This document shows positions 32,601 to 36,897 of a stretch of DNA of 64,000 nucleotides, one piece after another. Below the pieces are notes generated by a model. The model had not been told where the DNA came from. It worked only from the letters and a program-made list of their open reading frames with translations, and ran no database searches. The stretch spans positions 62,001-126,000 of the forward strand of contig NW_005434576.1 in the NCBI RefSeq assembly GCF_000315625.1. The letters are read 5' to 3'. Made by a program: the position numbers and the translations under genes. Source of the stretch: Guillardia theta CCMP2712 (taxonomy: Eukaryota > Protista > Cryptophyta). Every line of letters begins with the position of its first letter. Positions within the stretch are counted from its first letter, which is position 1.

Positions 32601-33781
32601 CCATGCGGGGATGTTCAACTTCCAATCTCAGACCATGTCTCAGGTGATACAGCAGCGGTACATGCCGACTCACGACGGGCAGATGGAGGCCCATCAGTTC
32701 CTTGCCAACTTCTTCGAGGACGAATCGAACTCCAGCCTGACAAGGCGGATTGAAGAGTTACCCTGGCAGCTCATGCAAGCAGGAGACAGCGAAAGGCTCT
32801 GCAAGTGCATCTCGGAGACCAGGATGTTCCTCAAGCTCTGGGATCAAGACTTCCGCCTTGACTGCTGGAGGTATGTCCGCTTCCTAGAGCAGCAGAACGT
32901 CATCCTCAGCCTGGGAATGTACTGCAAGGCCAGCAGCAGCGCCTTCGAGCTGGAAGATCCTAAGCCCGAGCCTGAGGTGATGGCCGAAGCCAAGCTCAAG
33001 TACGGGGCCTTCATGGCTGAGCTGGGATTCATGGAAGTGAGCCTCGAGTTCCTGCTCAAGGCCAACGACACATGGAATGAAATGCATGAGAGCGAAGACG
33101 AACGAGTCGCGCAGACGTTGGAGACTGTGGCTAAGGTGCTGGCAAATCTGAAGTCACCCGAGGCATCGAAATACTTCGAGCGAGCCTTGCAAACAAGTAA
33201 CATGCTTCGGACAAGTAGCATCACACACACTGACCCGTCTTGCAGGAAACAGGCTGTGCAAGAAGACTGGACCGGACACAAAGCTTGCGATGCTGCATAA
33301 CGACTGGGGGCTTCATCTCAAGAGGGAGAGTCAGCACAACGAAGCGATCAGAAACTTCATGCGAGCTTCAGAGATCTGGACGAGGAAGCTCGGAGCCAAT
33401 CACCTCCATGTGTCGACAGCCAATCTCAACATCAGCACCACGTGTTACGCCATGGGGAACATGCAGACAGCATCGGAGCATGCAGCTCTTGCCATGGAAA
33501 TCCGCAAAGAGGCTGTAGGTGTCAACCATCCTCTATACGCTGAGGCGTTGCTCAACTTCGCTGCTGTTGAACTTGGGAAGGAGAAAATGGGAAGAGCCCG
33601 ACGAGAAGCCGAGATTTTAGTCCGTCAAGCCATTGCCATCTTCGAGAGGACTCGGGGTGGGCAACATGCTGACACACTGTGGGCAAGGTCGTTCCTGACT
33701 GAAGGCTTCGGAGCTTCCCTCATAGACGGAGATGACGACACCTCTGATGAAGATGGGGATGACGAGCAAGGAAAGATCTAG
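29603..33781 (+). CDS. Nephrocystin-3-like protein: myristoylation motif, coiled coil, DUF4062-like region, NACHT-type P-loop, TPRs
   Basis: Exon 1 MGGGASK...; coiled-coil exons; ISTFEDFFMERD, LVDLW, MLGERYG; GEAGSGRT (Walker A variant); FLFLDGVD; GNPQFL; EELPWQL; LGANHLHVSTA / VGVNHPLYAEAL TPRs. Confidence 0.8.
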
Positions 33782-34164
33782 CAAATGACTTGCTGTATTG
33801 TAAATATGTATTATTACACAACAATGATCAACAAAACTCATGTGACCAAGACCCCTCGAAAGGATGGCTGCCACTGTGTGGTTCATGCAAAAACTTCGCA
33901 GTCATAACCGCCAAGCCTTGGTCAAACATGTCCTTGTTGTTCATTGACACGGTCGTGAAAACAGCTCACAAGATGATACTCAGATCCGAACGCTGACCTG
34001 CCACTGAGTCGGGGTCTATGCAGAGTTCCTTCGCTATCCTAAGGTAGGTACTGTAAGCCTGGCAAGAGTGATCCAACCACGCCTAGTGAACTCTGACCCG
34101 TCATTCTCATCACCGTCGACATCTTCGCAGCAAATTGCTGCCCCCACGAATCCCAAGAAGGTGC

Positions 34165-34810
34165 CTAGTCCAGTTCGTAACGCAGAAGGGCGTACGACTT
34201 GTTGCTCCTGTTGTCTTTGACCGAACTCTGTGAAAGCTGAAACCCGAGGTACTTAAAAGTAGAAACAACAGGCATGAAGTCCGGTCGCTGACGATCCACG
34301 TACATCCAAACTGTGGTACATTCCAAAGACTCTGCAACCTCCAGAAGGGAGACCAGCGACTGCTTGCTCGAAGCTGAAATGGTTGAGGGTGCCGCAATGT
34401 AAAACTGGGATTTCTCACAGCTGTAGTGAGCACTCCAGTTCGCCAAAACTGTATCTTGCGACGACTTCTTCTCCACCGATTCAACCTTGAACGAGATGAA
34501 GCTCGAGTCCATCAAGGCCTCGGGCACATCCACAATCTCTAGTCCGCTCAGGGGGGCATTGCCATTCTCTCCGACCTCCTTGAAACCAAGGGTGGAGAGT
34601 TTACAGCATACGTCAAACCCACGACGGTGGCCGACCCACCAACGTGGAGCAAGAGCACGCCAGCACCTCGCTAATAGAAAACTGGTCAGTGTCTTGAAAG
34701 GGTTGACCACAACTGTAGCACCTGACGCGCCCAGAGGGAGAGAGTTTCTTGAAAACAGTCATACGACTCTTAGTACTACAAATGTGATTATTATCATTTT
34801 CTAACACCAT
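34165..34810 (-). CDS. OAZ: Ornithine decarboxylase antizyme; ORF1 (34810-34613) + ORF2 (34614-34165) joined by a predicted +1 ribosomal frameshift
   Basis: ORF2 contains SKQSLVSLLEVAESLECTTVWMYVDRQRPDFMPVVSTFKYLGF, the antizyme C-terminal signature. ORF1 ends ...GRPPSW-V-stop (TGG GTT TGA C) and the +1 frame continues D-V. Confidence 0.9.
34556..34621 (-). promoter_or_regulatory. +1 frameshift site UGG-GUU-UGA-C with adjacent 3' stem-loop
   Basis: Stop at 34615-34613. Downstream RNA GUA-UGCUGU-aaa-CUCUCC-ACC-CUUG-guuu-CAAG-ga-GGU-c-GGAGAG-a-AUGGCA-a-UGC pairs as nested stems. Confidence 0.75.
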
Positions 34811-36897
34811 GATAGACAAGATCTATGTAAGCACGTCTGACAAAGTTGAGTTGGAGTAGTTTGGCTGCAAACGCAAGATGTCAGCTCGGACCACTAAGTC
34901 GCATGCCTAGGAAACAAAACACGAAAACAACCAATATACCACGAGACTCAATTCGAACCATCGAAATCATGGAATTGAGTTAGTGGATTCATGTCACTTC
35001 TCAAGTCCTAATCGAAAGAAAACGGCAATACATCGACCGCAAGCTGCCTTTTCTAGAGAGGGAGGGTAGGCGGGAGAGAAGACGAAACAACGCGATATGC
35101 GTCGTAAATCAAGGACAGAATTCCTGTTTCCTTTAGCTCATTCTAATGTATAAACTGGTATTCAAGGATGATGAGAACGCCCTAATGAGGGCGGATAAAA
35201 GTCTGTGGCTCCTTAGAGCTAGGAAGGGAATGTTAGAACAGCATCACAAACTTGCATCTTCAGAATCTCTTCCTGGTTTCACTAAATCATGGATTTCAAG
35301 TCTCGCTCATCGCAAATCGCATCTCTCCTGCATCATCATTTGCTCTGCGCGTTCCCTCATGTTCAGCTGCCGCTCTCTGTCATTCGCTGCATGCTCCTCG
35401 GCTCCACGCCCTCTAACCTCCACCCCACCCCAGCTAGAGACTTTTTCTACCCACCCTACGAGAGCATCACCCTCTACACACACCTCTATCCGTCTTCAAT
35501 ACCTCTTGTTGGCCTCCTCGGCAAGTACCCCTCATAAATCACCCTACGTGAGACCCCCACCCTTTCAAAGAAATTTTCTGTATCATACACCCCGAACTTC
35601 TAGAAGGATTTGACCACAAACGGGTGGGTATTGGAGCCCAAAATTTTCATGTACCCCCATTTTTTACCCACCCATCCTCTTCCCACACCACCCCACCTCC
35701 TGCAAGGTTTCGACATTCAAAGTTTTGATTTGTTTGATGAGCTCCGACCATCCTTCCACTTGGTCTGCACCCACCCACCCCACCCATCGATTTCCAATTC
35801 CTACTACCCCAAATTTTCCATCTGACTACCCCACTTGAACCAGCCTTCTCGAACGGTCCACGTATGCCTACCCCTAAGACGGGGAATACCCCACCATTCA
35901 CAACCTTTCCCCACGTTTCAACTTGATTCCCCACAGGTCCTAATTACTCCCCAATCCAGTACCACCCACCCCTCTTCTAAACTACCACCCTGTTGTACTC
36001 AGGATTCCAACTCGAACCCCTACTACACCGCTTCCTGATTGGGGAGGAGGTGGGGTAGTTCTGAGCACAGTATGCTATGATGTACCCACCTTGGTTAGGA
36101 AAGATTTGGGGAAAAAAGTGGGTGGGTAGGGGGTGTAAGGGACAAGTGAGTAGGGTGGATGTGCTTTAAATACCTTGCACGGGTAGGGTGGTCATGGGAG
36201 CATGACGTTGGGGGTACCGCGTGCTGTTTGTTTGTGAGTTGAGTCAATAAAGAGGAGGGGTAGGTGATTGAAACTCACAGAGAGGGTTAATTTGATGTTT
36301 CATGAAGGGGTGGCGGACATGGTGGGTGGGTAGGGGGTCAGGGTAGGCTGCAACAAGGAGAAGTGATGCCAGAAGGGTGGGGTGGCTCCCTGCAGCCTTT
36401 CCTGAAGAAAGACAATTAGCTATCCCTGTTTCGGGAAGCAAGGCGAGGGGGGCTCGGTAATAAAGTATTGACTAAACGTTTTGCAGCTGGTGCGGAGAGA
36501 CATGCAGTGCTGTTGACGAAGGGGCGGTCTAGTTAGTCAACGAGACTAGGGGGGGTTGCATAGCAAGACCGCTATGAAGAAGGAAATATTGGATTATCAC
36601 ATGAATAGGAGGGTGATGATACAGACGGATGAAAGAGGTTAAGGCAGGCATGCAGGAAGCCAGATTGGCATGTTTTGTAAGCAATGCGGACGAGAGACTT
36701 GGTTTGAGGCAGATAGTCTTCACGAATAGGAACAGTATCCTTAAAACCAGGATGACAGGAGAATTTGGTTCATAGTAGGAAATTAGACGATAGAATTTTG
36801 AGTGAAGATGAATTGATGTATTGGTAAGTCTCTTGAATACAGCTATGCCGTTAGGCAGGTTGATCGTAGAAACGACACAGGAAGGAACATAGTTGTA

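Follow-up and report, generated by a model that had tools for sequence, protein, structure and literature searches.

Guillardia theta very probably has a single antizyme gene, in which a 48-codon ORF1 is followed by a 149-codon ORF2 in the +1 frame and the 197-residue product arises only through a +1 shift of the ribosome at a GUU-UGA-C site. The analysis demonstrates the two-frame architecture of the gene, the retention of the stop codon in spliced RNA, and the conservation of both the site and the frame switch among relatives. The gene lies on the minus strand of the stretch of DNA that we analysed, which is 64,000 nucleotides long (hereafter the window, to which all positions refer unless a contig is named). 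The initial annotation had taken the source of the window to be probably a cryptophyte, and it is indeed G. theta.

Re-reading the sequence gave the same picture of the two frames as had been described at the outset. On the minus strand, the frame that starts at ATG 34810 reads to ...CCA CCG TCG TGG GTT TGA C, with GTT at 34618-34616 and TGA at 34615-34613. ORF2 (34165-34614) is open in the +1 frame for 149 codons, from GAC 34614 to the stop at 34167-34165. The putative shift site covers 34612-34618: with GUU in the P site and UGA in the A site, U 34615 would be skipped and GAC (34614-34612) read next. The ORF2 frame contains a GTG (34710) as its sole start-like codon 5' of the junction, and its first ATG, at 34512, lies 34 codons 3' of it, close to the figure of about 35 given earlier. 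We thus find a short ORF1 with a UGA end that overlaps a longer +1 ORF2 whose start codon is not conserved. The N-terminus of ORF1, M-[VMI]-[LI]-E-x-N, is common to the orthologues and lies in a region covered by RNA contigs; a Pfam search with ORF1 gave no significant match.

The structure of the transcript was obtained by aligning four sequencing runs (X1, X5, X15 and X23) to positions 33600-35500 of the window. Two RNA-type contigs from two studies, X1 (1315 nt, depth 952) and X5 (1043 nt), both skip exactly 34671-34721, a stretch whose ends read CT..AC on the plus strand and GT..AG on the strand of the gene. The DNA-type contig X15 keeps this stretch, being collinear with the genome across it, and X1 and X5 are therefore spliced RNA. 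The 51-nt intron is in frame (codons 30-46 of the genomic reading), which is why ORF1 looks unbroken in the genome. Its removal joins a first coding part (34722-34810; 29 codons plus 2 nt) to a second one (34613-34670), which ends with the conserved peptide SEVLACSCSTLVGRPPSWV and the TGA stop. The spliced junction reads ...GGG CGC GTC AG/C GAG GTG... (the slash marks the splice) and encodes SGRVSEVLAC, and the orthologues encode SGRVSE(V/T/L)LAC without the 17 extra codons. Since the intron is spliced out, the mRNA has an ORF1 of 48 codons, and a full frameshift product would comprise 197 residues; the 65 codons first reported for ORF1 are correct as a genomic count but not for the messenger.

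Where the same two contigs cross GTT TGA and the whole of 34579-34618, they match the genome without a single changed letter or gap. The main mature mRNA thus retains both the stop and the frame offset, as the check proposed for RNA across 34579-34620 had sought to establish; this statement concerns the main form, which is what assembled contigs represent, and a rare spliced isoform could escape them. The start of X5 sets the minimum extent of the 5' UTR (34811-34866). The 3' UTR (33779-34164) is about 375-385 nt long and ends at two poly(A) sites near 33790 and 33779. These were placed with the raw reads of X23, a 3'-biased run with essentially no depth over 34240-34815, so that it informs on the poly(A) sites only: its reads pile at 33792-34111, and their loose ends are T runs before 33790 in 110 reads and before 33779 in 25 reads.

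The RNA data also touch the neighbouring genes. X1 extends to 35394, perhaps joined to an upstream transcript, and a small 3'-biased pile of RNA reads in the antizyme orientation lies at 35136-35455 on the minus strand. This pile is probably the 3' end of a same-strand upstream gene that was fused in X1, rather than a 580-nt 5' UTR. On the other side, plus-strand reads of opposite orientation (33600-33860) stop beside the antizyme poly(A) sites 33779/33790, which suggests a convergent gene with a 3' end adjoining or overlapping the 3' UTR of the antizyme gene. A close relative, L039, has a TPR_12 gene downstream of its antizyme gene, on the other strand.

A protein search returned 32 homologues, and their contigs together with a metagenome scan provided 23 distinct relatives (the comparative DNA set omits the more distant homologues P0026 and P0032). 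The frame switch is conserved in 22 of these 23: ORF1 ends in ...PP(S/P)WV, GTT TGA C follows, and ORF2 continues in the +1 frame, which bears out the expectation of a conserved stop and +1 offset in orthologues. None of the 22 frameshifted relatives departs from the heptamer GTT TGA C, despite the availability of synonymous codons for Val and Asp, and the codons before it do vary synonymously (GGG/GGA/GGT, CGG/AGG/CGA, CCA/CCC, CCG/CCA, TCG/TCT). Nucleotide diversity peaks at the third codon position, in the ORF1 frame before the site and in the ORF2 frame after it. Identity between ORF2 and its homologues is 44-67% over the whole length that follows the junction, of which the first 12 codons show the conserved pattern D-[VI]-x-x-[KR]-L-x-x-[LI]-G-[YF]-[KR].

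Some relatives depart from the common pattern. L034 (positions 199-640) is a near-twin of L031 in which the ORF2 frame is lost after ...WTAFF, through an assembly indel or as a decayed copy; the L031/L034 lineage has DWPPPWV in place of GRPPSWV and has lost the otherwise invariant Cys99. L013 (1100-1500), like L014 and L030 (genomic contigs of at most 38.6 kb), has an intron of about 165 nt where G. theta has the 51-nt one, and in L013 another intron follows immediately on ...GGCTACAAG, 36 nt 3' of the stop. Both introns are lacking in the L001-type relatives. The presence of introns therefore varies around a fixed shift site.

The protein encoded by ORF2 matches the Pfam family PF02100 (ODC_AZ) with E 2.6e-10 and 40.6 bits, above the cut-off of 24.2, in agreement with the antizyme C-terminal signature recognised at first sight. 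The core of the domain lies at 34222-34407 (residues 102-163 of the 181-aa reading from 34710). ORF2 also weakly matches the solved chains of antizyme 1 (E 0.006), including the human chain 4zgy_B. A six-frame search of the G. theta assembly (87,145,349 bases, 669 contigs) found PF02100 at one place only, with 41 bits. Judging from these matches, the locus is a genuine ornithine decarboxylase (ODC) antizyme gene.

The assembly also encodes the expected target of such a protein. It has at least three eukaryote-type ODC genes, three long frames matching PF02784 with E about 1e-77, and one of them, compared with the human and trypanosome ODCs, gave E about 3e-110, far better than with diaminopimelate decarboxylase; the antizyme target is therefore present in the genome. 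The three frames (L035-L037) are intron-free and separate, encode 500-526 aa, and were located at C106:96070-96774, C191:56508-57212 and C43:264993-265694; PF02784 also has two weaker matches, on C190 and C36. By sequence matches, G. theta thus seems to have at least three ODC paralogues for a single antizyme gene. A predicted complex of that ODC with residues 30-149 of ORF2 gave weak support, scoring 0.47 against 0.00 for the best control. The mark reached by this score is attained by 51 of 78 solved pairs and 2 of 108 mismatched pairs, and passes at or below 0.60 are mostly wrong unless the pairing is likely beforehand. The runs agreed in at least 69% of contacts, with a partner pLDDT of at least 72. 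Because a similar ODC-antizyme complex has already been solved, the prediction shows likeness at most and is not taken here as evidence for binding.

The two frames could in principle be used without any frameshift, ORF2 being translated alone through leaky scanning or reinitiation at ATG 34512, or from a non-ATG start, and ORF1 serving as a regulatory uORF. This is the model that gene callers give, since the public protein sets (JGI/IMG, MMETSP) contain only a 115-aa piece of ORF2 starting at ATG 34512, the kind of truncated product that gene finders had been predicted to report; and the Tetrahymena antizyme is apparently made without a frameshift (Ivanov and Atkins, PMC1874602). The comparison with relatives nevertheless makes it improbable, and we rejected it. 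ATG 34512 is not conserved, relatives having EAILDS or EAIAGN at that place, which argues against an independent initiation of ORF2. The 34 codons between the junction and this ATG are conserved as protein from GAC on, and the ORF1 stop always overlaps ORF2 at one place, at the invariant heptamer. Finally, one natural variant joins both frames at exactly the shift point.

This variant, L029 (positions 1048-1629 of the metagenome contig Ga0315899_10037227), has one continuous ORF, ...VRPPWVDAKSK..., and its DNA differs from the usual sequence by the absence of a Ser codon and of one T. Its W-V-D junction has the sequence that a +1 shift at GUU-U-GAC would be expected to give. L029 is changed at six otherwise invariant positions of ORF2, and the metagenome from which it comes also has a copy with the usual frameshift, L025. 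L029 may be under relaxed constraint or in decay, or it may be a frameshift-independent paralogue. Continuous ORFs in orthologues had been named as an observation that would count against the frameshift, and this derived, in-frame copy is the one such case; one among 23 does not refute the frameshift reading.

The junction of L029 also bears on the direction of the shift. The same frame would be reached by a -2 movement, with tRNA-Val slipping back from GUU to GGG to give W-V-F-D; only the junction peptide would tell this from +1, and a mammalian antizyme cassette placed in S. cerevisiae shifts -2 more than +1 (PMC1874602). We consider this very unlikely in G. theta, given that the natural in-frame junction is W-V-D without an extra residue and that the +1 shift of mammalian antizyme was demonstrated by protein sequencing (PMC1874602).

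A frameshift would be unnecessary altogether if a 40-nt intron at 34618-34579 were spliced out, joining W to E in frame. The GT and the AG exist as had been described, the removal of 40 nt restores the frame, the genome uses very short introns (the 51-nt one lies only 53 nt upstream), and the AG coincides exactly with a real exon-intron boundary of L013. Yet both spliced RNA contigs that remove the 51-nt intron keep this stretch, no splicing of 34618-34579 being seen in either, and its 12 codons encode, in the +1 frame, a protein sequence that relatives conserve. The equivalent GT..AG of L004 and L011 spans 39 nt, so that its removal does not restore the frame. The true intron of L013 starts just after the 12 conserved codons and not at GTT, which explains the AG/G of G. 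theta as an old exon boundary. L039, from an independent environmental metagenome assembly, shares 98% identity with the window. Between the two there are 8 differences in the 51 nt of the real intron, 0 in the 40 nt of the supposed one, and 6, mostly synonymous, in about 597 nt of coding sequence. The one-sided hypergeometric probability that all 8 differences fall in the 51-nt rather than the 40-nt stretch, calculated from these counts, is about 0.0075. Splicing of the 40 nt is thus largely refuted by the spliced contigs, the conserved codons and the L039 pattern, and we rejected it as most unlikely.

A one-base break of the frame would also be expected from an error of sequencing or assembly, or from a 1-nt insertion that had turned the gene into a pseudogene. 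This explanation has practically no chance of being right and was rejected because the shift site is conserved. The DNA-type contig, the two RNA-type contigs (from other studies) and L039, which has the same GGGTTTGAC, all show the site unchanged, so that the extra T, named at the outset as a possible assembly error, is none; GTT TGA C recurs at the same codon in 22 distinct relatives with ORF2 identities of only 44-67%; and the gene is expressed, polyadenylated and the sole antizyme locus of the genome.

Two elements around the frameshift site are candidates for stimulating it. The first is a 3' stem-loop at 34556-34611 (minus strand), in whose inner helix (about 34599-34567) Leu-Ser codons would pair with Gly-Glu codons. 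Folded alone, it has a minimum free energy of -20.8 kcal/mol and a z of -3.2, and it is the most structured 56-nt window of the antizyme mRNA (0 of 72 others were better). Over 22 relatives, many of them closely related, the mean z at this place is -2.67, against medians near -0.3 elsewhere; among these relatives folded singly, the stem-loop was missing in L004, L011, L012 and L031. The inner 12-bp helix, which begins 13 nt after the stop, pairs in 79.6% of cells, compared with 40-56% when the partners are slid. Its covariation score was reached by just 7 of 500 shuffles, a figure biased in its favour since the helix was derived from the same sequences. With 14 relatives as input, RNAalifold yielded no convincing common fold (-5.15 kcal/mol, little covariation) and did not find the helix; the stem-loop emerged only from single-sequence folding and from the counting of a named helix. 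We thus regard it as a candidate stimulator with moderate comparative support.

The second candidate is the C-terminal peptide of ORF1, ...LACSCSTxxGRPPSWV, whose amino acids are conserved right up to the P-site codon and include a Pro-Pro pair. By analogy with the nascent peptide of mushroom antizymes (PMC4505036, PMC1874602) it could stimulate the shift, although its conservation may equally reflect a role in the mature protein. One may speculate further, in a version that we regard as doubtful, that the cryptophyte peptide (...SEVLACSCSTxxGRPPSWV) acts as a nascent-peptide sensor within the exit tunnel, dependent on polyamines or eIF5A, and makes the ribosome stall on GUU-UGA-C. If so, it would, together with the stem-loop, represent a second independently evolved nascent-peptide stimulator of frameshifting beside that of mushrooms, and L029 would be a natural escape from such control.

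The model that we propose for G. theta is as follows. Removal of the 51-nt intron yields an mRNA with a 48-codon ORF1 ending in GUU UGA C, on which the ribosome would hold peptidyl-tRNA-Val on GUU with the poorly terminating UGA-C in the A site. By moving one base forward it would read GAC and complete the antizyme of 197 aa, with the predicted junction ...PPSWV-DVCCK.... The P-site codon is a known shifty one of the antizyme family: GUU is one of its seven P-site codons and is listed for protists (Table 1 in PMC1874602). The shift may take place by re-pairing of the tRNA from GUU to UUU or by occlusion of the first A-site base, with the ORF1 peptide and the 3' stem-loop as putative stimulators. 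As in the rest of the family, polyamines would be expected to stimulate the shift, and the antizyme to bind ODC and send it to degradation, closing a negative feedback on polyamine synthesis.

The use of GUU-UGA by cryptomonad antizymes is already known. Ivanov and Atkins, who surveyed about 300 antizyme genes in 2007 (PMC1874602), reported such shift sites in 'two representatives of Cryptomonas algae', so that the G. theta case is well supported but not a discovery, and the gene may itself be one of the two. Beyond that survey, the literature searched contained no link of antizyme to the Guillardia nuclear genome or to cryptophytes: a 2016 review (PMC5009743) does not mention the two species, and the one paper joining antizyme and Guillardia concerns the nucleomorph genome, where no antizyme is expected. 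The mRNAs of 2007 belong to the same family and the same algal group and have the same two-ORF +1 layout, the same GUU P-site codon and UGA. They were known from ESTs, whereas the gene is described here with its genomic structure. What is added is the 51-nt intron of ORF1, over 20 further relatives, the conserved peptide at the end of ORF1, the candidate 3' stem-loop and the in-frame variant. The gene model of G. theta, of which automatic annotation leaves a 115-aa fragment, is now fully resolved, including the ORF1 intron, the shift site and the poly(A) sites. The relatives, the peptide, the stem-loop and the in-frame copy are useful material on the evolution of +1 shift signals. With the response to polyamines presumed by analogy, the case would confirm an antizyme-frameshift feedback circuit in cryptophyte algae, far from animals and fungi.

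The gene resembles mammalian OAZ1 in having a short ORF1 ending in UGA, a +1 ORF2 without a functional start of its own, a C-terminal ODC_AZ domain and an ODC target in the genome. They differ in the P-site codon (GUU in G. theta, UCC in the UCC-UGA-U of OAZ1) and in the base after the stop (C instead of U), and the identity of ORF2 to human OAZ1 is very low (E 0.006). OAZ1 has a 3' pseudoknot, whereas in G. theta none was found and there is at most a simple stem-loop, whose conserved helix, starting 13 nt after the stop, lies further from it than does the mammalian pseudoknot. The agaricomycete antizyme, which has a nascent-peptide stimulator (Yordanova et al. 2015, PMC4505036) with the peptide ...SGGP(G/E)WRF (PMC1874602), is similar in that the end of ORF1 is conserved as amino acids up to the shift site, with synonymous codon variation, and has Gly/Pro and a Trp near its terminus. 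The cryptophyte peptide is nonetheless a different one, its P-site codon is GUU and not UUU, and its stimulatory effect is putative. The same GUU-UGA core is found in the antizymes of Cryptococcus neoformans, Aureobasidium pullulans and the shore crab, which belong to unrelated lineages (PMC1874602), and this site has been argued to have arisen several times independently (PMC1874602).
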